From Orbicella franksi (Eukaryota), in the NCBI GenBank assembly GCA_964199315.1, contig OZ116709.1, positions 5,766,001-5,830,000 on the forward strand: a stretch of DNA of 64,000 nucleotides, written 5' to 3'. The notes under the pieces were generated by a model. It was not told the DNA's origin. It worked only from the letters and a program-made list of their open reading frames with translations, and ran no database searches. The translations under genes and the position numbers were made by a program. Below, in pieces: positions 29,601-60,304 of the stretch (its first letter is position 1; each line of letters opens with the position of its first letter).

Positions 29601-32600
29601 ATCCCGTGAGGATGGGAGTGCGGGTAGGCGATGGAAGATATTTCCGTGGAAGGATATCTTGTCTTCAAGTGTACAACGTTGCCTTAAATACACGACAAAT
29701 AGCAGCACGAGCAAAGAGATGTTTTGTACCAGGTATGCTCCTCTAATTCCATTCGCGCCTTGTTTTCATCTATACCAGATGCCTAATGTAGTTATCCTAT
29801 GACTGTTGTACAGGAATAACTAGGTTCTGTATTTTGTTGTTGGGAAATTGTTTTGATAGCCCCGTAGGTTTAGATTTGTTTAGTTTAAGTTGTTTGTTTC
29901 CAGATTAAGGATAGCTATGCCAAACATATAAGTCATTCCGGGGCTGCGTTTGCCTCAATTATAAGAGAGGCTTGATGAAAAACCTTTCGTCAGTTTATAT
30001 AGGGATAAATTTGACTTTTAACATTTGCAGAAGGTGAGGAAATTATTTTTCTGTTGAAAGATTTAACACTGAGATGACCTCAGCGTGTCATTTTGAGATG
30101 GAGTCAAAAGACAACTCGCAGACGGTCTCTGTGGGTGTTAGAGTATATCTGGTTTAAAGAATACAACGAGAGAGCGTGTACCGTTTTTACCAATTTCTGT
30201 AATATTCAGTCACTGTTGTAGAGAATATCAGCTTTGATGCTAGAATGACACTTAGCCAACAAAATAAATGTTAAAAGGTTAATAGAGGTGCCTCGTATTG
30301 GAAGATGAAATCTAACAACTACTTAGTGGACGTGAATTAATCAAGTATCTATCAATCAAACTTTCCCAGGACTTCCCAAGCCCCGTCCACCTCCGCGCCC
30401 AACAGGAAGACTGTTCAAACGCAGGGGTTGCTACAGAGACACATCCCGCCGAGCCATGGGCAGGCTTCTCGGCAATCTACGAAGAAGGAGAGACGCTGTC
30501 ATGCGATGTTTCCTCTTGGCGACCAGAAGAGGGTACCGAGCATTTGGTGTCCAGGATGGAGGCGAATGCTTCTCTGGACCGCTGGCGCATCGCACCTTCA
30601 GAAGATATGGCCGCACAAACAGATGCAAGAATGGGAGGGGAGGACCTTGGGCTAATGACGTTTATATCATTATCAGAAGAAGTAAGTTAATCAGGTGTTT
30701 GAAATGGTCAAGTGGCTTGAATTAATCCAACTCTTTTTTTGAAAGTATGTATTAGTGTCGTAGTATTGATCTGTTTTGTTGTAAGAACGACTATCTTGTG
30801 GAGGTCTGCTAAAGAGAAAGGCAAGCAAAACTTGGATATTTATTAACCTGAACAGAAACCTTGGTTGTACTCATTGGCTGTACGATGTTGTTCTTCCATT
30901 TTAAACGGTCGAGAAGCTTGAATTCATTCAACCTTTTTTTCCTAAAAGCAAGTATTGGTGTCCTAGTATCGATCCTTCTGTTGCAACAAATCATCTTAAC
31001 GACCATTTTACATAGAGCGGATTTTAACTGAGTGTTGAAAGCAATCAGGCAATTACTTAGGTTTGGTTTTACTATGGTTTGAGACTGGCTTTGTCTTAAT
31101 GGTAAGTAATTGGTTTGGGTTTGGTTTTACGACACTCAATTGAAAACTGCTCCGAACTTGGAGACAGTGGAAGGTGAGCAAAGAGAAAAGCATAGATGGT
31201 TATGGATCTGAACAGAAAAACTGCTGTTCGTTCTTTGGTACTGATTGGCTGTAAGGACGACATTTTCTTTCTCTATCTTTGCGCTCAGCGATGTCGAAAT
31301 TGAAGTGAAAACTTTATGTTAACTACAGAAGCTTGCATTGCTATTAGAATGTAAATCTTGTTTGGTTACCATTGTAGAGCCTATCCCCCGTCCACCTCCT
31401 CGCCCCAGACCTCGACCACGACCAGCATTGCCAGGTGAGACGGAGAGCAACAGCTTCAAACCTAACTTGAGCTTTTCACCATTGGTTACACGTCGTTAGA
31501 ATAAGATTGCAAAACCTTTTAATTCTTGTTTCACTTACGTTTTACAGTCTGCAAGGTCCGTGTGGACCTGGGATTCATTGTGGATAGCTCAGGAAGTGTT
31601 GGTCGTGCCAACTTCATCAGAAGCCTGAACTTCATCAAGAATCTGGTCAGTTCGTTTGTGCTATCTCCTCGAAATTCCAGAGTGGGAATCTTGGTGTACT
31701 CTCATCGTGTCGTCCCAGTGTTCTCCTTCGGTCAATACAAAGGTCTGCGCAGAGTACTCCGAGCCATCGATAGAGTCAAGTACATTGGCGGGGGAACCAA
31801 GACAGGTCGGGCTCTCTCTTACTCCAGGAGGTACCTGTTTGCAAGGAGTAACCGGCGAAAGGTCTTGATCCTGTTGACAGACGGGAAGTCATACGACCGA
31901 GTTGGAAAGCCAGCTGCAGTGTTACGCAATATGGGTGTGCAAGTTTTCGCCGTGGGTGTTGGCAAACGAATAAGCATGAAACAACTCATTCAGATTGCAA
32001 GCAATCGACGGCATATTTTCACAGCGGACTTCAGAAACCTGGGTTCGTTTGTGAGAGCGATTAAGCAAAAGGCTTGCAAAGGTAAGTATAATAATGTTCC
32101 AATGTAATGAAAAAGTTCTTTTTAGCAAAAAGAGTCTATTTTACCTGCCTGTTAAGTAAATTCTCAGTTAATAATCAAAACCTGTTGAGAACAACTGATT
32201 AAGTTTCCCACGCGAGACGATTCGCAGTCCAGTTTTCTTCATATCGGATTGTAGGACATGAGCCTAATCAATCAATCCTTTATGTAGCCACCTAACGTCT
32301 ATGAGTCAAAAGCTCGTTCAAAATACGCACGTGCTAACTAAAGATAAACAGAATGTAAATGGAAAATCGCAAGTATTGCCTCATTGCAATTTCAGTTAAG
32401 AGTTCTTGCCTTTGTTTCAGGTATTACCAAAAGACCAACAAAACCACGTAAGTGCATCAATTTTATTTTGTTTCTATGTGAGATGCTAAAGTACTTATTC
32501 TGGATATGTCTTCTGATATTACTTAAACTGTGATAAGGTTGCTCTTTCCATTCCTACCTCCGTCCGTGTTTTTATACACCACTGTGAGTGAGGCACTAGA

Positions 32601-35600: not shown

Positions 35601-38600
35601 TAATCTACTTTCGACTGGAACTTCATCTATTGATATTAGAATCCCTTCTCTTCAACGGGTTGAAAAGAGGATATTGTCCAAACAACGGCCGATGTTTTAC
35701 ATCATCCTCTTTTCAATGTTGATCTCATATGACCGTCATTATGAAACGAAACCTAACTTCTCAAATCTAATAACATTTGTCTTAGTAGTTTGGTAGTTTT
35801 TGTCTTTACATTAACTGAAGACAGTCTACTGTCACCTGGAATTTTATCTCTTGATATTAGAATCCCATCTCTTTCACGGGTTAAAAAGAGGATGAAGTCC
35901 AAACAACGGCCAAGTTAGTCTAATATGGCCGTCATCTTGAAACGAAGTGTAAATTTTCTGGTCAAATAACTTTTTATGTAGTAGCTTGGTAATTTTTGTG
36001 TGGATATCAAAATATAAATATGTCACACAAAACTTCATCTCTCGATGGTAGAATCTCATCTCTTCAACGGGCGAAAAAGATAATGATGTCAAACATGTGC
36101 CAAGTTACTCCAATATGGCCGCCATCTTAAAACGTAGTCCAACATCTCAGGTCTAGCAACGTTTTTCCTAATACCTTGCCAGTTTTTGTCTTTCCATCAA
36201 GACGTAAAACTTCATCTCTCGATAATAGAATCCCATCTCTTCAACGGGTGAAAAAGAGAATGATGTCAAACATCGGCCATGTCAGTCTGATATGGCCGCC
36301 ATCTCGAAACGAAGTCTAACATGTCAGGTCTAATAACGTTTTTGTTAGTACCTTGCTAGTTTTTCTCTTTACATCAAGACAGTCTACTTTTGCCTGGAAC
36401 TTAATCTCTCGACATTAGGCTCCATCTTTTTCACGGGTTAAAAAGAAGATGATGTCAAACAACGGCCATATTAGTGTAATATGGCCGCCATCTTAAAACG
36501 AAGTTCAACTATTCTGGTCTTATAACTCTTTTATTAGTAGCTTGGTAGTTTTTGTATGAATATCAAGATATAAAACTGTCACTGAAAACTGTATCCCTCG
36601 ATGTTAGAATCACATCTCTTTAACGAGTGGAAGATAGTATGATGAGAAACATCGGCCATGTTAGTGTAATATGGCCGCCATCTTGAAACGAAGTCCAGCA
36701 TCTCAGGCCTTTTGTCATTTTTCTCCGAACCTTGCTAGTCTCTGTCTCTATATCAAGACGGTCTACTCTCGCCTTAGAATCACATCTCCTGAACGTGTTG
36801 AAAAGAGGATGAAGTCCAAACAACAACCAATGTTTCACATCATCCTCTTTTCCCTGTTGATCTAATGTGGCTGTCATCATGAAAGGAAACCTAACTTCTT
36901 CTTTTTTTGTTGTTTTAATTAATTAACAACTGGCGTTTTCTTGTTGTAGGTCCGATGCCTGTTCCTATTCCGAGGCCGGGACCTGGTGGAAGAGGTGAGT
37001 ATCGGGAGGCAACTAATTAAGACTTTTCATGGCGCCTGTTTTTTTTTTCAACAAACTGTAACTCAGCCAGCAAGGCACTGGATCCGTTGCTCTCTGTTGT
37101 CGTTTAGAGCGCGCCTCTTGTGTCCATAAAGTTACCTTTTGCTACAGTCTTCTTCACAGTTCACTGTTTAAGGGTTTGAAATAATTAATTTCTCAGTGAT
37201 CTCCACATAAAGAAATTTCGATTTACTTAATTACTTTAAAATGAACTAATGCCACATTTCTTGTCATTCCTTGAAACAAGTACTGATTCACAGTACTTTC
37301 AACTTCTTTACCGAATTGTTTCAGTTTGCAAAACACGACTCGACCTTGGTTTCATCATCGATGGCTCAGGAAGCGTTGGTCTGTCCAACTTCAAACGCTG
37401 CCTTCAATTCATTAGGAACATGGTTCGTACCTTTGTCATCTCGCGTCGCTTCACGCGAGTCGGTGCCGTCCTTTATAACACGAGAGCCTTCAAAGTATTT
37501 GGTTTCAATCGGTACGGTAACAAGAACCAAGTCCTGCTCGCAGTAAGGCGTATAAGCTATCCTAAAGGAGGCACCATGACGGGACGGGCCATCAATTATG
37601 CGTACCGCTATCTCTTCCGTCGAAGTAGAAGACGAAAGGTGTGTATTATCATGACAGACGGACGATCGTACGACAGTGTGGTGGGTCCTGCACGAAGCAT
37701 GCGCAAGGCAGGGGTGGAAATCATTACGCTTGGCTTGGGATTGCGGTACAATATAAGGCAGTTGAGGAAGATGGCTTCCAATCGTCGACTGGTGTTCACA
37801 GCACGATTTAGAAATCTGAATTCTGTTGTCAGGGTTATTAAAAGGAAAGCATGTGGTGCGACAGGTTAGTAAAAGGAAGAATGTGAAATTCAGGCATTTT
37901 AATCCCAAGATTGCTAAATTTAAAATTAAGAAAAAAGAAAGGAAAATCTGTTTGGTACAGTAAAATGTTAATTAACGAACGGCACAACAACAAAGTTCTG
38001 ATAAATAGCTTTAATTTAAACGGTCACTCCTCAAAGTTTTAAAGCCACCAGCATGATAAACAGTAACACCTCATAAAAGTACTACTCAACAGCTTTTATT
38101 GGAATGGTCACACAGTAGGGTTTCATCCTACACATCATATTAAATAGAGTTTCATCCACGTGGCAGTTGTAATGGTTCCAACCACGGATAAGATAGGGTC
38201 TTCTACACACGGTAATGATTTTGTTCCATTAGAGAACAGTCGAGTTAATCCTGTTCCCTTCTGTCAGTTGTATTTAAAAGTTATGACTTCATTTCTCCAA
38301 GGTGTTAAACCAAAGCCTCGCCCTAGTCCCAAGCCTCCACGTCCTGGTCAAGCTACATACTTCTGGGAAGGCTGTTACAATGACAAAAGAAGACGAGCCA
38401 TAAGGTACAGACTTGGAAACTTCCACAGACGAAAAGACCCAGTGAGCGCATGTGCTGCAGCAGCCTTGAGACGTCGTTTCAAAGTATTTGCAGTAGAGAA
38501 TGGTGGAGAATGTTACTCTGGCCGCTCGGCTCATCGAACATACAACCGTTACGGACCCACCAATCGTTGCAGGCGAGGCAGAGGAGGCCCGTGGGCAATG

Positions 38601-41600
38601 GACGTGTACAAGTTTGGACAACGTATGTCTTACGTTGAATTGTGTTTATAATCGCAGTAAAGGTCACAAACAATTCAAGCAGCCCAAAATGATGCGTAAA
38701 CAGCGTGCTTTGCTCCAAAGTGTGGCTGTTTGTGCGTGAGGGTTGCGCTTGACTTTTTGAGATTGATGCTTCCCGTTTTGCATTCCTCTCATCGTGCCCC
38801 TCGCTCGCTTTTTGCGAAAAAAAAGACAAAAAAAGAAACAAAAACAAAAACAAAAAAACAAATGTAATGGCACCTTGCGATAAGGCTGGTTGAAACAAGA
38901 AACAAATATGCACATTTCTCGCTTGATAATAACACGTAAATACAGGCAATGTGTAGATTTTCCTTTTTTTTTTTTACTGACAAAATGCCAAGGGGATAAA
39001 ATTTATCCTACCATTCTAAACAGTATTCGAATAAAATGTGTGCCTATTACTATTAATGTGAACGTGGAATGAACGAGGAATGAACGAGGAATGAATAAAT
39101 GCATAATAATGAATATTAACGTGAATCCCAGTCGAGGTGACTGTAGCATAACAAAAGTCTAAGCTATCGCATTGGAATGACTTTGTGTAAATGTTAACAC
39201 GTGTGTGTACACACAAAGTTAATTACTTCAGCCGAAGAAGTATAACGTCTTGTTGTTTAGCAATCAAAATAGAAAGCTTAGTCAACTGTCGCAGACAAGT
39301 CGCCATCTTTGCTGGAACAGTGAGCATAATTGTTGGAAATTACATTTAACCTCTCAAGTGAGAGGAGCACCTTTATTTTGCACTACTGATGAAATTATCT
39401 CTTAACACTCAACTTTGCCATGATTCTAACATTCCAAAAGTTACAACTTTAACTTCCATAAAATACGTTTTCATTACAGCTCGTGGTTGGACCAATGTTT
39501 ACATCCGAAGTATCGGCTGCTTCAAAGACAAGCCTAGACGTGCTGCCGGTAGCATGGTCGCCAACTTAAGGGGATTGAAGTTTGCCGTCCGAGATTGCGC
39601 GCGACAGGCCCGAAAACGAGGCTACAGGCTATTTGCGGTGCAAAATGGTGGCGAGTGCTTTATGGGTCCCAGAGCTAAAATTACGTACAAGAAATATGGT
39701 CCTTCCAAGCGGTGCCGAGGAGGCAAAGGCGGTCCCTGGGCGAATAATGTCTATATTATAGTTGTGAAAGGTAGGTTTTTAGATTTTGTGGGAATTATTT
39801 TAAGTAAGCTGTTTGGTTCCACCTATTTTTCAATTCAGTACCTTGGCTCCTCAAGAATACTAAGAAAAAAGGGGATGAATTCCAACTCCCCCAGATAAGA
39901 ACTGAGAGATGCAAAAGCTTGTTTATGAACAGGTTTGCTTTTAAACCTCTGTAGATTTTAAATTGTACACATCTTATTTTCATTCAGGATTTGATTGTGA
40001 AGACTCACGTCTGCTGCTCATGTCTGACGTTTCTCAATAGCAAATAAAGATTTCATTCATTTATTCATTCATTCATCCATTTATGCATTCATTCATTCAT
40101 GGTTCTTATCAATGAACGTGTGTCATATAGTTAACTAATTCATTCATGTATTTTCTGTTGTCATACTTCCTCCAAAAGCTTGACCCTCTACTCCACTCTA
40201 CCAACACACATACAACCCACCAGTCCCCGCTGTGCTCCGACGAAGGGCTAACGGTCAAAACATCAACCTCGTTGACCGACAAGAGCGATTAATTTACCTT
40301 AATCGACCTAAAGTTGATACTCGTCACTCGTCACTCATCATACTCGTATTGCACCACGTCATGTTTCCTTTTGTAAAATAAAGTTATTAGACGTTTTTTG
40401 CCTGACTGGTCGGTGAACGCGCAAGTTTGCTAGCCTGAAAGAAGCATACTCCGCGAACCTTTGTTCAGTTCTTGTTGGATTATTCCTGCAGTCCATGCAC
40501 ATTTTTTCATTGCTATTGCTCTATCTTTTAATGCTTATGAAAGTTTCAAACTCTCTGTTTAGGTCGAGTGAGACCCAAGCCAAAGCCTGTGAGGCCAGTT
40601 AGACCAGTTAGGCCTAGAGGTTAGTGACCTTTTTTATATAACTATTTCTGATGTTTTTATTAACTTTGTTTGAGGTCTTTCTTCTTGATTCGTTTTAAGA
40701 CTTTACCCAAATTCTGAGGCCAATTAAATGATTCCCATTTACTTCAGTTCATAAATTTCTCTTTTACGATAAATTGATTATATAATTCTTTCCGTCTAGT
40801 GAAAACTCGAGCTGTGGCTATTTTCCCGCTTAATGGAGGCACAAAGGGAAAAGATATAAGTTCCAACAGAAACGTACGCGGAGTACTCAGTTACGTCCGC
40901 CCCGCGCCTGGACCAGACGGAACACGTGACGACTCGTACCAGTTCTACGGAAGAAGCAACAGCTACATTCTCTTCCCCAACCGAGGTGGCCTAGATACCA
41001 AACGTTCTATCACTCTCCTAGCGTGGATCTTCCACCAAGGACGTGCAGGACCCATCTTCAACTACATGCCAAACGGCTGGGGCGTGCACTTTTGGATGAT
41101 AACACCGACAACGCTGTTTGTGCGGTTTACGCGTCGAAGAGGACGGCGTTTCACAACCGCGGTCGTAAGCAGGAGTATCACACCTGGACGATGGCAGTTT
41201 GTTGGTGCAAGTTACAACGGACGAACAGGCCAAGCGAAGCTCTTTGTCAATAGAAGATTCACAGCGAGGAAATACATCGGGAGAATACGGTTGGCGACTA
41301 ACTACCCGGTGAGAATGGGAGCTCGTATCGGTGACGGGAGATATTTCCGAGGACGAATCTCGTGTATGCAGGTGTACAATGGTGCTCTTTCCCTGCGACA
41401 AATCATCTCCAAGAAACGAAGATGTTTTAGAAGAGGTAAGCTGAGATTATATAGTTACATGTCCCGCTTTTAGTAGGAGAGGACAATTGAGTTTGCCGTC
41501 ATGATTTTTCGTGGTCTTTGCATTGACAAACAGAGAGGAGAGGTATAGAAAGAAAATCATTAGGTTGGGCAATGTCTGGTTGATCTACCATCAAAATAAT

Positions 41601-53600: not shown

Positions 53601-56600
53601 AACGTCTCGATTTGGCCTTCTTGATTGACGGCTCTGGCAGTATCAATGCTTACGGCCGAGGGAACTTCCGGCGATGTCTCAACTTCGTCAAACGATTGGT
53701 GGCTTCATTCAGTATCTCCCCCACACAGACTCGTGTTGGTATCGTTCTATTTTCAACTCGTGCATGGCTCATCGCTAACTTCAGGAGATACAGAAACAAG
53801 CAAAGCTTGTTACGTGCTATTAGTCGCATTAGATATCCCCGAGGTGGTACGAAAATTGGACGAGCGATGAGATTTGCCAAATATCAGTTGTTTAGAAGGA
53901 GAACCAATCGGCGAAAGGTGAGTGTAGGGATGGAAGGTTCTACCCTGTTCTCTTCAATATATTAATGACTATTTAAAAAGTGCACCTTTTTGCCTTCTTT
54001 ACTTGAAGTCTTGTGGCTCTATCAGTGTCTATCCTTTTTTCCAATCTAGGCCATACTGAAATTCATTATAACGCGTTTTGACTTTCTTAGAGGTGGTACA
54101 ACAAGCGATTATGATGTTTCAGTGCGTCCTTTTTATCTAAGAAATACATGCTGTGTCTCTGTCTCTTTATATAGTGTAAGAATAGATTATAAATGAAATA
54201 GAAAATTGCATAAATGTTTTCTGACAATTTCGCTGGCTACCCTTGAAGTCTGGCTGGCGGACTAAGTGGGCATCTGATATCGATCGATAGGAGGCTAGTG
54301 CTACAAAGCGCACGCTCGTGGTTTTCATAGGTCATGGCCAATTCGTCAATGATCACAGTCGATGTTCTAGATATGGTAAAACGGTGCTTACCAAAACGGT
54401 GTTTACCAACTTTGATAGTTAACTATCAATGTCTAATTGCCAGTTGAGGTACTGCCTTTATCACTGAGATAGCGTTAGCCCAACTCCATTTCACATTTTG
54501 TCATTTGTTCTCCAGGTACTGCTCGTCATGACAGATGGTATTTCCCAAGACTCGCTCGGGAGATCCTCACGTGACCTCCGAAATGCGGGCGTGCGTATTT
54601 TGGCGCTTGGAATCGGCAGAAAATTCAGACTAGCTCAGCTTAACCAAATGGCAGCAAACCCAAGATACGTGTTCAAGGCCGGCTTTAGAAGCCTTCATCG
54701 TGTGGTGAGGTCAATCAAAAGAACTGCTTGTGGAGGTATCTATCTTAAATTAAATTAAACAGAGATAAAGTACTTACAAGAGAAGATGAAGGGTAGCAGA
54801 AGTAATCCCCCATGTAGACCTTATTCTTAAGGTGATCCCGCTAAAGTTATTTTTAGATATGGCATCCAGTCCTCACGCGGATAATGTGACCGCGCGGGTT
54901 GCGTGGATGTTTTCTTGTAGGATAAAAATGTGTATGAAGCTGCTTGGGCTAGCCACGGAGATAAAATTCGTGTCAGAGGATTGGCTATTTCTAGACCCTC
55001 CTGGAATTTATAAAGCCGCAGATGATGTAAAAATAATTTGAGCGGTAAGCAAGGCGACGAAGGATGAACTCTTACCCTTTATCCTCTCCTAGTACTTAAA
55101 GTTACATTGCGCAATCCCGCAAGTCAGATATTATCATTATTATTATTATTATCATTATTATTATTATTATTTATTATTTATTATATTATTTTTTTCACTT
55201 AAATTCCTCATTTAGCATTTCCCTCAAGTCAGTTTTAAACACAGGTCTGTCCAGTACCAGGGTAGAAACGCTCGACCAAACACTGTATGAGATCAAAAAT
55301 CATCTCGTGCTAAAAGCAGAACATGGCGATTGATCAACCAATCAATGCTGCTTTTGACCTTAAAACAGGTTTTCACTAGAATCACAAGCATAATCGCGAG
55401 TACGATTCTCGCGTGCAAATACAAAGATACGCAAGGGAAAGCACGTAGATTGAATCATTGATTCTTGTGCTTGATTGTGCTTGCATTTCACAGTGTCTCG
55501 TTAGTCTGTTAAGCCCTGTTCAAACGGGAAATGTTTGGCGACCAAACACGATCAAACATTGTTTGGTGACCAAACAACACCTTGTTTGATCGCGTTGAAT
55601 AAAATTTGAACGTCAACAAACATTTGATCAAATACTATAAAATTTACTCGTTTGGACGATGAACAAATATGTTTGATACCGTTCGGCCATTTTGTTCAAT
55701 ATCACCTGTTTGGTCCTGTTTGGTCGCCAAACATTTCCTGTTTGGACAGGGCTTTATATTTGCGTTTATGCGTGCGTCGCTAATGAACATCAGGCTTTGC
55801 GATACTGACAGTATTTTGTGTTACATATTTTGTAGCGCGTCGTGACCAGGCACGCAGAACAAAGTGGAAGCGTAAAACTAAAACACGTCGTTTTCAGTGG
55901 AGAAGAAGGCGGCGGCTAAGGAGAACGCGAGGACGCAGGCGAAAGAGGAGAATGCGTACGTAAAAACTGGTCTTGTATACCCAACTTAAAGGAGCTCAGT
56001 CACAATTTGCGCCTCTTGAAAAATTTAGCCTAAATGTTTCAAGTTCGTCGTTTGTAATCCGTGTCAATCTTCGCATCCTTGACCATCCTTGTTCCTTTAT
56101 GGTTTATTATTATCTCTTTGATGTTTTTCTATCTTAGTAAACTATTATTTTCAGGTTTCCTTCCATTTAAAGGAGATTTTGTACGTGGCCAAAAAAAAGA
56201 CGAAACACCGTGATTGAGCTCCTTTAAAAGTTTATTCGAGATTCTTTTGGAATATTTTCCGGATTCTTTCGGGGTTTCTCTTTTGAAGTATTTAATTCTC
56301 GTTACCCTGGTTCTCAACACACACCGGTTTTGATGTGACGGAGAGGACGTTAGGCGTGGTTCTCCCTTCACTCTCTGTCAGTATGAGTTGAATTATAAGT
56401 CTGAATTATTTAAGATTTTTCAAGTTCTAAACCACCTATTATGAAACAGCATGCTATGCTACCTGGAAATGGACACCATTTATCATTTCATCGATTTGTT
56501 AATGCATTGCACATATCGCCGATTTAGATGCAATGTATAGAGTAAATTTTTTTACGCAGGCCTCCGCGCATCTCTTATTTAAAGACAAAACATTAGCAAG

Positions 56601-58716
56601 AATATGATTATTTTATCATTCTCGGTTTCATTCTCTTTGCAGCGTGGGGAAAGAAAAGAGATGTAGTGATCGTCAAACCTGACAATTTCAACGAAAAAGA
56701 TGACGATAACCACAGTGGCGCTGATGATGATGGCGATGGCGAATCATCACGTGATTCAAAGCAAGTACGGGGAAGTCAACGAAGCGAAATAGCTCAATTG
56801 GAGACTAAAGGTTAGTGTGTTAAGTTGCAAAACGACAACAAGTTCTGTTTTAGATTAACTGCAAAGACTGTAGAAAGCAAAATACGAGGGCAAAAGACTG
56901 CGAGAAGCGAAAGACGCTAGGGTGCACTGACAAATACGACTTTATTTCCTGCCCTGGGAACTGGCGTTTTGCCAGCATTTCACAGTGTGCAATGCCAGAT
57001 ACCGTGTTCGACATCCGTTAAAAGTTGTTTGAATTCTTCTTTACAATCATTCATACCAAGTAAATGAAGAGCACAGTTTGAAGTACTGTTTCTGTCATTC
57101 TACAGTTAACAAACCAGACCTGACCCCAAGCTATTTATGGCGTTTTGGATCATCTGGAAACAACTCCGTCGCCCTAGATGAAGTGCACGGTCACGTGGTG
57201 CATCTTGAGGGAGGAGCCTCCATCTCAAACACCACCGAGAGAGGCCTGGTGGCTGACACCAATGGCGGATGGCTATCACTCAAAGAAACCAACAGTGAGT
57301 AACTGTGCAATGATCTTGCTTCGCGATGACATGCGAGGGTCATATTTATTGGTGGTTTGTAACCAGTCCCTAGAGATTCACTTGACAAACTCGTAGTGGC
57401 CATGTTGGCGGCAATTATGAAAGAAGCCATCGCAAAGAGAAATTTGTTTTTAACATTTACCAACATGGTGGCTATGACGCCACATGCAAACCGAGAATTG
57501 AAATAAAGCTCTCTTTTGATATGTTGTTGTTGTAAACGCTCTTTAAAGCTGTAGAACAACCTTGTGGTCACCCAAATAGTTTGGGTGATGACCAGCTACT
57601 GTGTGTATGATTAATTTCTCTATTAATTTATAAATTTTTGCAAATTACAGTACAAATAAACGTTATCCATATCTTGTCTTGTGAGTCGCCTCTACGCTAA
57701 TCAATATATGCAGATGGATCCGTGTCCTCGTAAACAGTTGTTCAATTTATTGTCATACTAAAAATTCTAAACAGCGTACTCACAAATATACTGATGTACT
57801 TTTGTTGTTGTTGTTTCCTCTTGTATGTTTGTTTGTTTGTTTGTTTGTTGGTTGGTTGGTTGGTTGTTTGTTCTTTTTTACCTTTAGTGAGATAATCCTA
57901 AGCTTGTTAGAGATAACAGAGGCAATTTTTGAAAGTTCTGAATTCGTTTTCCTCAGATACCTGCTTCAGTGATCCTGGGCATTGCTCAGAGAACGGTATG
58001 ACGGTGATGTCTTGGATCAAACTCAACAAGACGTCTCTCAGTGACAAGACCAGCTCGTACATAATGTCTAGTGGCGGCCAGTCCACCGCATCTCGCGGTT
58101 TCGCCATGCTGTACATGCCTAAGAGGTACATCGTGATTCTAAGCACCAAAAACAAGCAGTGGAAACTGGACACGCCTGTTTTGCCAAGCGGATGGTTCAA
58201 TCTCGCTTTCACTTGGCGGGAATCCAACCAGCTCAAGTTATTTGTGAATGGAACCTACGTGACCTCCAGTAATCCTGCTTTGGTTTCCAGGCCCCACGAT
58301 TCGTTTACGACGTTTGATGTTGGTCGACCAAACAATTCGGATAAGCTAATGTACAGATTCCCATTGAGGATAAGCGATTTAGCTCTCTGGGAGAGAGAAC
58401 TTTCTGAGCAGGAATTAAAATCAGGTCTGTAACTTACACCCTGTTATTTTAATTGATAGAGCAACTGGTCAATCTTCGCGCAATTAAATTATCGCCTGCC
58501 TCTTAACAAGTATTTGATGAATGGCAAATTAGAATATATACCGTAAAATACTGGTTATAAGCCAGAGAGTTATATGACTTAACAAAGGAATTTAGGGTGG
58601 GAATACTACGAGGGGAGCTTAGTCTCTTGTTAGCATCTCCCCGAGGTCGGGAAGATGCTTACAAGCGGTATGAAAAAAAACTTTGGGACTTGAAGGCTCC
58701 GATAAAAACTGGATTA

Positions 58717-58792: not shown

Positions 58793-60304
58793 ATAGCTCA
58801 TGGCAAATATATTTGTAAGCTCCTTTCTGACTTTGTGGTTATTTCTCGGGGACGATGTAGAGAATATTGACGAGAATTATGATGCAAGGTTAGGGGTGGC
58901 TTTAAGTTATAAGGCAGCTAAGCCTTCTACGAATGTGGAAAATGAAATGAAAATGGTTTTTTTGAATGTTTCAGCGATGTATATGCAGTTAAGCCGTCAC
59001 AGTGAACCACTGAAGAAGAACAATGAAATTTAAGGTAATACATTATTTCATTATTTGTACTATATTGAATACATTACTCGCGCTCTGATCATGAATACTG
59101 AATACACAGACGAAAAAACGGTCCTGACGTTACTCCACTTTTGCCTTAAAGTTTAAAAAAAAAAACCTGCCGTTTCTTGGGCCAGTGAACGCGTGCATCT
59201 ACGCAATTCTCGCGTCTCGTTGACGAATATCGCGTATTTTCTGCCATCACTTAGAATAGACGACAGCGGACAAACCATGGCATACTGAATTTTAATGTTG
59301 TGTTTATTTAAGAGAACTTTCCTTAAACAGCTACCCTATAGACTGAAAACGGCCTTGTTAACAACGGACATGGCTAGGCGAAAACCAGAAGGGTTGAACA
59401 ACGTTCCCGCTGCTATATTTTTTTGTGTCGTGTTTTGCCTCTTGATTGTCAATTGTCTGAAGTTGTGGTTATTATTTTGCAGATGTGACATTACTATAGC
59501 AACGCGTGAAGGTTCAAGAGATGCTCTGAGGCAACGCTGTTTTCTTAGAGTCAGCAAAATTTGCTGAGTAGTGCATGTGTTATTAGGCTGTGTTGTTTGT
59601 GCATTTATTATTGTGCCACTTGAACAAATAAATTTATTACCGTGAATTAGTTTCTCGTCTCCTTCTTTGGAGAGTGTTGACGAAACGGATGATATATCCG
59701 TGGAGCATATACGCGAACTCACAGTGAGAGCACGGGGGAAAATAGAACGATGTTGTTGTTACATGTACGAAGGTGAAAGCGCGGGTTGGTTATCGCGCAG
59801 GGACCAGGGTCATCCCAACTGCATGGGTGTTGCCTATAGTTTGATTTTAGACAGCATGGTTAAGACAAGGTTAAGGTTTAGGATAAACGTAGAAAGACGG
59901 AACGCACAAGGAACACGGAATAACGCAGTAGAAACACACGCGGGAAAGAAAAGAACGAAAGAAACGCGGGAAAAGCACTAGGAATCTCGAGAATGCCATG
60001 GGAAAAGTACAGCAGAATGTAAGGGGATGGGAACTCCTTCCCCGCCTCCAAAAAAAGCGTCAGTAGTCAGCTCAGACTCAATTTTGAGAATGATGCTAGG
60101 GCGAAGGAGTATTTTAAAATAAACTTCAGCGTTACATGTACAGTGAGGGTTACTAAAAACCGAGGGGCTTCAGCGGAACATGCTAGGGAACGCACGGATC
60201 CCATAGTGAAAGAACCAGGGACGCAGAAATGGAACGCCATTCACAGGTAAATGCATGGGATACCTAAGGGAACTCATAGGGAATATAATATACGGGGAGC
60301 GTAC

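Follow-up and report, generated by a model that had tools for sequence, protein, structure and literature searches.

Organization of the Locus

The sequence analyzed was a 64,000-nucleotide (nt) stretch of the Orbicella franksi genome (GenBank assembly GCA_964199315.1, contig OZ116709.1, positions 5,766,001 to 5,830,000), referred to below as the window. Its plus strand carries a long array of exons encoding one domain each, namely Laminin_G_3 (LamG; PF13385, E = 1.9e-16), VWA (PF00092, E = 3.2e-43), and, in a few cases, WSC (PF01822). Toward the end of this array, two short exons, designated A and B, connect the last VWA domain of a giant arginine-saturated protein with a near-neutral terminal Laminin_G_3 domain and form a conserved hinge. 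The hinge is composed of a polybasic tract without predicted structure, the motif x-G-[KR][KR]-R, and a poorly conserved spacer that is acidic in this lineage. The GKKR motif is a candidate proprotein-convertase hinge in front of the terminal LamG domain, a reading that we hold with moderate confidence.

The coordinates of the hinge and of its neighboring exons are summarized in Table 1. Same-strand LamG_3 exons span G000:C12:5,718,785 to 5,813,486, and the exons described here establish where this gene, of more than 100 kb, ends on its 3' side. The original prediction had described the two exons as a C-terminal switch with an acidic C-terminal propiece, which did not hold: exon B is still followed by exons C to E, which together encode a Laminin_G_3 domain of 237 residues. 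The C-terminal PF13385 match scored 53.9 bits against a cut-off of 27.6 and covered profile positions 10–150 of 151. For the last VWA domain, the Pfam match rests on a sister exon; the second exon of this domain (54516-54735) is 91–92% identical in relatives.

Table 1. Features of the hinge region and the 3' end of the gene (window coordinates)
Feature	Position	Strand	Remarks
Last VWA domain, first exon, 3' part	53685-53917	+	X2 contig covers 53685-53915 and joins to 54514 (GT..AG, cut +2); open reading frame (ORF) with VWA signature
Last VWA domain, second exon	54516-54735	+	Ends ...SIKRTACG, base G carried over (phase 1)
Exon A, polybasic	55836-55955	+	120 nt; AG acceptor, GTACGT donor; phase 1-1
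Exon B	56643-56810	+	Junction codon Pro, WGKKRD..., acidic tract, conserved 11-residue tail; phase 1-1
WGKKR motif, candidate convertase and amidation-type site	56645-56659	+	G-[KR][KR]-R kept in orthologues and paralogues
Acidic low-complexity tract in exon B	56690-56743	+	9 acids in 18 residues; length and sequence vary between relatives
Exon C, first exon of C-terminal Laminin_G_3	57106-57294	+	Joint 57294>57957; 91-96% identity in relatives
Exon D, core of C-terminal Laminin_G_3	57957-58424	+	PF13385 E = 2.9e-14; donor G|GTCTGT
Exon E, last coding exon (...KS|AMYMQLSRHSEPLKKNNEI)	58975-59033	+	Stop TAA at 59031-59033

An in-frame TAA at 58430 was considered as the stop codon and rejected, since transcripts splice 58424>58975. 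Directly after the stop codon of exon E lies an intron of the 3' untranslated region, which runs up to about 59483 (region 59034-~59483; donor TAAG|GTAATA); the transcript of a relative resumes at 59481-59625.

At the other end of the gene, a candidate first exon was located about 56 kb upstream of the window (L027:~800-958; G000:C12:~5710300), with the signal-peptide-like sequence MLSSSLLRALLFLLVTSHVSA. Downstream of it are exons for a WSC domain, for a Thr/Pro-rich and acidic segment, for VWA, and for LamG_3. The giant Laminin_G_3/VWA/WSC protein is probably secreted. Within the LamG_3/VWA array of the window, WSC-type exons were found at 30336-30722, 38148-38648, and 39362-39895. Two of them were scanned with PF01822, one passing the cut-off at E = 8.2e-07 and the other falling short of it at E = 2.5e-4, and the third was judged by eye.

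Exons A and B and Their Splicing

The original prediction held that two exons had been missed by the ORF track, and their coordinates, AG/GT borders, and residue counts all proved to be as it gave them. Both exons were confirmed by translation in the reading frame of the last VWA exon, whose end lies at 54735 (...TACG|G). The 40 codons of exon A comprise 20 Arg, 5 Lys, and 1 Asp, giving a net charge of +24. Because its 20 Arg residues use all six Arg codons, exon A is not a simple triplet repeat. Exon B reads P|WGKKRD and continues into an acidic run with 9 acids among 18 residues, likewise as foreseen. Neither exon matched any family in a Pfam scan, and a search of exon B against its own genome returned itself as the sole match.

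Transcript support came from contigs of a polyA metatranscriptome run (X2), which supplied joints with GT..AG borders at 53917>54516, 54735>55836 (depth 29, short side 30 nt), 55955>56643 (depth 31, short side 76 nt), and 57294>57957. Two of the three junctions named earlier as checks on the prediction, 54735>55836 and 55955>56643, were thus seen. The third, 56810>57106, was absent from the RNA runs examined, in which X2 contigs end at 56718 and resume at 57095, 11 nt inside the intron. It was present in L010, a 1458-nt Joint Genome Institute (JGI) metatranscriptome contig from a related coral.

Along L010, one uninterrupted reading frame covers the latter half of the VWA domain and exons A, B, C, D, and E and closes with a stop, and each proposed junction coincides in window position with the end of one of its blastn blocks. 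The joints of exon D were additionally backed by the spliced homologues P0006 and P0011. An alternative acceptor at 57077 was ruled out, being out of phase with the donor of exon B.

No X2 contig read through the donor at 54735, and unspliced X2 contigs covered parts of the introns at lower depth. Run X1 was mostly unspliced (pre-mRNA or DNA). The raw-read RNA runs X23 and X24 gave zero coverage of any exon and covered intronic repeats only.

In exon A, run X2 shows AA>TG at 55875-55876, which replaces Lys by Met and keeps the frame; this is an allele or a difference between close species. Exons A, B, and C (within 54516-58424) are all of phase 1-1, and the domain exons are probably of phase 1-1 too. 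This arrangement fits exon shuffling and would permit in-frame skipping of A and/or B. No joint skipping either exon was seen in the limited RNA data.

Conservation in Orthologues

A HMMER scan with exon B retrieved four ORFs on unspliced contigs of related corals, whose DNA is contained in L002 to L009. Genomic DNA spanning both exons was available from three further lineages, all of which contain exons A, B, and C with every AG and GT kept. Across the four lineages, exon A measured 120, 123, 117, and 114 nt and exon B 168, 168, 165, and 177 nt. All of these length changes were multiples of three, and exon A retained 19–23 Arg. In the orthologue of exon C at L002:3574-3758, a one-base deletion breaks the frame; the contig is a long-read assembly of 2x coverage, and the deletion is most likely an assembly error rather than the mark of a pseudogene.

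Pairwise codon counts were small, so that the following values permit a qualitative reading only. The WGKKR..PD block (14 codons) showed 0–1 non-synonymous against 2–4 synonymous changes per pair, a ratio of non-synonymous to synonymous rates (dN/dS) of 0–0.06. Exon A evolved fast at both kinds of site (dN 0.21–0.28), with dN/dS of 1.1 in one pair. The acidic tract, of variable length, was the least constrained part (dN/dS 0.5–1.5, dN 0.22–0.36), and the 11-residue tail that follows it was well kept. The codon at the junction of exons A and B encodes Pro in three lineages and Arg in two others, and further copies of exon B (P0047, P0049) keep its opening 13 residues.

A more distant orthologue was available as a transcript (L011) and as genomic sequence (L014), 97–99% identical to each other, and has the same exon chain. 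Its exon B opens with YGRRRSEVINKP, and its motif reads YGRRRSEVI. Exon A has grown here to about 250 Arg-rich residues (L011:27-~750; L014:2975-3508), a tract that is in part a 90-nt (30-codon) tandem repeat with fewer copies in the genome than in the transcript. The Asp run is missing and the acidic tract almost lost, leaving a spacer with a net charge of roughly −2.

The original prediction had expected both WGKKR and the acidic tract to be conserved in orthologues. The first expectation was borne out in the form G-[KR][KR]-R, and the second failed, the acidic tract being almost lost in L011/L014 and absent from the paralogue and from L012, both described below.

Paralogues and Other Homologues

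A paralogue was found through its LamG exon on the same contig, 3.05 Mb away, with a LamG domain about 52% identical; it is too diverged for a search with exon B to retrieve it. It consists, in order, of VWA and WSC exons, a 351-codon polybasic exon, a small exon opening (A)GKKRGDIL, and LamG. The polybasic exon (L026:4653-5705; G000:C12:2712500-2722400) contains 119 Arg, 25 Lys, no Asp, and 2 Glu, and is rich in Arg, Leu, Ala, and Gln with a helix-like character. In L013, from another coral, the polybasic exon of this paralogue comprises 352 codons. Its dN/dS against the copy in this genome is 0.19, which places the tract under purifying selection.

Spliced transcript ORFs P0055 and P0057 read ...RMRRMR-AGKKRG..., followed by the LamG domain. 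With the genomic copy L026, they give the paralogue motif AGKKRG[DEN]I[ILF]. In a third lineage, L012, an exon opening (L)GKKRNEVIT stands ahead of the LamG exons. An Acropora digitifera model carrying no name beyond "uncharacterized protein" has its closest match in L012. Neither the paralogue nor L012 contains the acidic tract.

A small homologue, P0060 (a Logan contig, 279 residues), comprises a signal peptide, AVRGRKRDETEKG, and a LamG_3 domain of the same type. RGRKR|D lies in it between signal peptide and LamG, with no polybasic tract.

Taken over this set, the exon after the polybasic one opens with x-G-[KR][KR]-R-x-[VEDN]-[VI]-[IL]. The Gly before the basic residues was invariant in every orthologue, paralogue, and small homologue examined, and the residue before it was W, Y, L, or A; the Pro was likewise not conserved. 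The polybasic exon itself ranged from 38 to about 250 residues in orthologues and reached 351 in the paralogue. Within the linker, constraint is strongest on Gly and the three basic residues after it.

These comparisons bear on the view that the linker is a neutral, fast-evolving charged spacer of low complexity whose apparent conservation merely reflects short divergence times. Such a spacer would account for the dN values of exon A and of the acidic tract and for the one exon A pair with dN/dS of 1.1, as well as for the lack of a Pfam family for either exon and of any structure in the modeled linker. It leaves unexplained, however, why the motif persists in paralogues with LamG domains that share only about 52% identity, why dN/dS is 0–0.06 on the motif block and 0.19 on the 351-codon tract, and why reading frame and splice sites are always kept. 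We regard a neutral linker as very improbable.

Charge and Candidate Cleavage Motifs

Candidate basic cleavage motifs are concentrated in the linker. G[KR][KR]R occurred once in the 5203 residues of the domain ORFs, compared with twice in the 97-residue linker (RGRRR and WGKKR). For R-X-[KR]-R, six overlapping matches were counted in 46 linker residues (exon A with PWGKKR) against 31 in the 5203 domain residues; five of the six lie within exon A, and the sixth extends into exon B.

Net charge was −7 for the part of exon B after KKR and +3 for exons C to E. Everything after KKR amounts to 288 residues with a net charge of −4 and an isoelectric point (pI) of about 6.0. In contrast, the 24 domain ORFs in the window sum to a net charge of +803. 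A structure prediction for the linker and LamG domain of a relative showed the linker as unstructured; the mean predicted local distance difference test (pLDDT) score of 48.8 denotes low confidence, too weak for a fold search.

The original prediction had combined these elements into a full model, in which an acidic C-terminal propiece masks the charge of the protein until secretion, a cut at KKR yields a C-terminal Trp-amide, and the polyarginine may be freed as a cationic peptide, which would be of the antimicrobial type. Several observations agree with parts of it. The G-basic-basic-R motif is conserved, Gly with basic residues is a recognized cnidarian amidation signal (PMC7523074), convertase and PHM-like genes are present in the genome, and the internal R-X-[KR]-R sites of exon A could free short Arg/Trp-rich peptides.

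Its specific components fared less well. The stretch after KKR is mainly the folded Laminin_G_3 domain and no propiece. A net charge of −7 cannot balance exon A (+24), still less a protein of about +800, and the supposed mask has dN/dS of 0.5–1.5, is nearly absent from L011/L014, and is missing from the paralogue and L012. The proposed convertase/carboxypeptidase/PAM signal survives as G-basic-basic-R, but the Trp does not; with different residues preceding Gly in different relatives, there is no selection for Trp-amide in particular. As a whole, this model is improbable.

The Putative Convertase Hinge

The reading that we favor retains the cleavage and drops the mask. A proprotein convertase would cut after GKKR in the secretory pathway, possibly also within the polyarginine tract, and would free a 288-residue fragment (spacer and LamG, pI about 6) from the giant polycation. 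A carboxypeptidase would then trim the exposed basic residues and halt at the conserved Gly, which could in turn be amidated, and the polyarginine tract would stay as the capped C-terminal tail of the giant.

The invariant Gly fits an amidation or trimming-stop signal, as cleavage alone needs no Gly. Recurrence of the motif as WGKKR, YGRRR, LGKKR, and AGKKR, and as RGRKR in P0060, is what a convertase/amidation signal predicts. The genome holds at least 10 convertase P-domain loci and exons of a PHM-type copper monooxygenase. The linker displays the furin-type R-X-[KR]-R sequence in a region that the low-confidence model presents as unstructured, and it offers what peptidylglycine amidation calls for, a conserved Gly directly before basic residues. 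Being large and selectively maintained in relatives, the polybasic tract suggests a working polycation and not merely a cutting site.

A number of points weigh against this reading. Cleavage and amidation are deduced from motifs alone. Near-identical RNA support comes from one run (X2), and the joint 56810>57106 was found only in the transcript of a relative. WGKKR has Gly rather than Arg at the P4 position and is not a canonical furin site, and R-X-R-R motifs also occur in folded domains, which makes motif counting of low specificity. Polyarginine peptides are furin inhibitors (PMC4482483), so that an extended run of Arg could withstand processing or block it. A run of 250–350 basic residues far exceeds the needs of a cutting site, and the aliphatic residues after the motif might serve otherwise, as a strand or binding motif.

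An alternative is an uncleaved electrostatic tether, which we consider possible but on the unlikely side. The polybasic tract would then be a flexible polyanion-binding segment of the intact protein, with sulfated glycans, acidic matrix proteins, mucus, or microbial surfaces as partners, and GKKR with its aliphatic residues would mark the end of the segment or serve as a docking motif for LamG. A tether agrees with a composition that is kept despite fast change in sequence and length (38 to about 250 residues, and 351 at dN/dS 0.19 in the paralogue), with the polycationic nature of the remaining protein, at about +38 to +43 per domain ORF, and with the inhibition of furin by polyarginines. It leaves unexplained why Gly and exactly three basic residues stand at the same exon start in paralogues whose neighboring residues diverge, and why the same motif lies between signal peptide and LamG in P0060, where no polybasic tract exists.

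If the motif is a real processing site, as the convertase reading has it, these matrix proteins would be made as precursors, and the free LamG fragment and the polyarginine-tailed giant would have separate roles. Processing at Gly plus basic residues would then apply not only to small neuropeptide precursors but also to very large matrix proteins of an early-branching animal. The conserved module of polyarginine tract, G-K-K-R, and LamG is common to paralogous giant coral polycations. Antibodies against the C-terminal fragment, the predicted new N-terminus, and cleavage-site mutants would in that case offer handles on the role of these undescribed Arg-saturated coral proteins.

A wider proposal, which is speculative and in our view unlikely, takes these proteins as coral-wide giant secreted polycations carrying an extracellular protamine-like module (40 to about 350 residues, up to about +140) that ends in G-K-K-R. 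Convertase, carboxypeptidase, and PAM would free LamG and leave or shed an amidated, Gly-capped polyarginine tail as the active end. Such a tail may bind polyanionic matrix or mucus, or kill microbes, and the neuropeptide-processing machinery would find a new use in amidating the end of so large a matrix protein.

Comparison with Known Systems

In architecture, the nearest analogue is Pif/BMSP of mollusc nacre. This secreted matrix precursor has one or more VWA domains on its N-terminal side and is cleaved at RMKR into two proteins (PMC11291548, citing Suzuki et al. 2009), the C-terminal product combining Asp/Lys/Arg-rich low-complexity regions with laminin G domains. The coral gene resembles it in having VWA (PF00092, E = 3.2e-43) and, C-terminal to a putative basic cleavage site (GKKR), LamG (PF13385, E = 2.9e-14). 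It differs in its dozens of VWA and LamG_3 repeats, its WSC domains, and its cationic character throughout.

Membership of the Pif/BMSP group was ruled out by the lack of the chitin-binding CBM_14 domain in the span of the coral gene, none of the 33 CBM_14 matches of the genome falling in G000:C12:5.71-5.83 Mb. The text of a paper on the Acropora skeletal proteome (PMC4890752) describes no protein of VWA/LamG/WSC architecture, and a search of the accessible literature returned no paper combining coral, VWA, laminin G, and WSC.

In cnidarian preprohormones, Gly followed by KR, RR, or KKR is a combined convertase and amidation signal, and Trp-amide peptides (RWamide, GLWamide) occur in anthozoans (PMC7523074). 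These precursors are small and contain three or more sites together with three or more similar copies of a peptide (PMC7523074). The coral linker shares the Gly with basic residues. In contrast, it belongs to a giant matrix protein with one conserved site (two with RGRRR) and a variable residue before Gly. No repeated peptide unit before G-basic sites was found in the window. With two linker sites instead of at least three and no peptide copies, the gene was excluded from the neuropeptide preprohormones as defined in PMC7523074.

Some resemblance to protamines and synthetic polyarginines was also noted, about half of exon A being Arg with almost no acidic residues. Protamines, however, are small nuclear sperm proteins, whereas the coral tract lies inside a multidomain protein that is probably secreted.

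Profibrillin-1 undergoes C-terminal furin processing at a canonical R-X-K-R-R site, which releases asprosin. Like the coral protein, it is a giant of the extracellular matrix, and its multibasic site stands close before the C-terminal fragment, whose release is only proposed in the coral case; unlike the coral protein, fibrillin has other domains and is not known to carry a polyarginine tract or a Gly/amidation-type signal. A basic processing hinge in a matrix precursor would be of a known kind; the conserved polyarginine module attached to it is unusual.

Hydra arminin and coral damicornin are cationic antimicrobial peptides whose precursors contain an anionic propiece, and C-terminal amidation is common in such peptides. 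The coral hinge similarly places a cationic segment, a basic processing site, and an acidic segment side by side. However, order and scale differ, the acidic part is not conserved, and the cationic part forms the tail of a protein of many thousand residues.

Repeat Elements in the Introns Flanking Exon A

Each of the introns adjoining exon A contains an element resembling a miniature inverted-repeat transposable element (MITE). The first lies in the intron upstream of exon A (55511-55754) and carries terminal inverted repeats of 48 nt with 92% complementarity. This multi-copy element is transcribed elsewhere, with an RNA contig depth of 138–206 compared with 5–30 around it. The second, at 55986-56227 in the intron between exons A and B, has 18-nt inverted ends. 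The summed RNA contig depth over it, about 30,000–55,000, marks this element as a very abundant repeat in coral transcripts.

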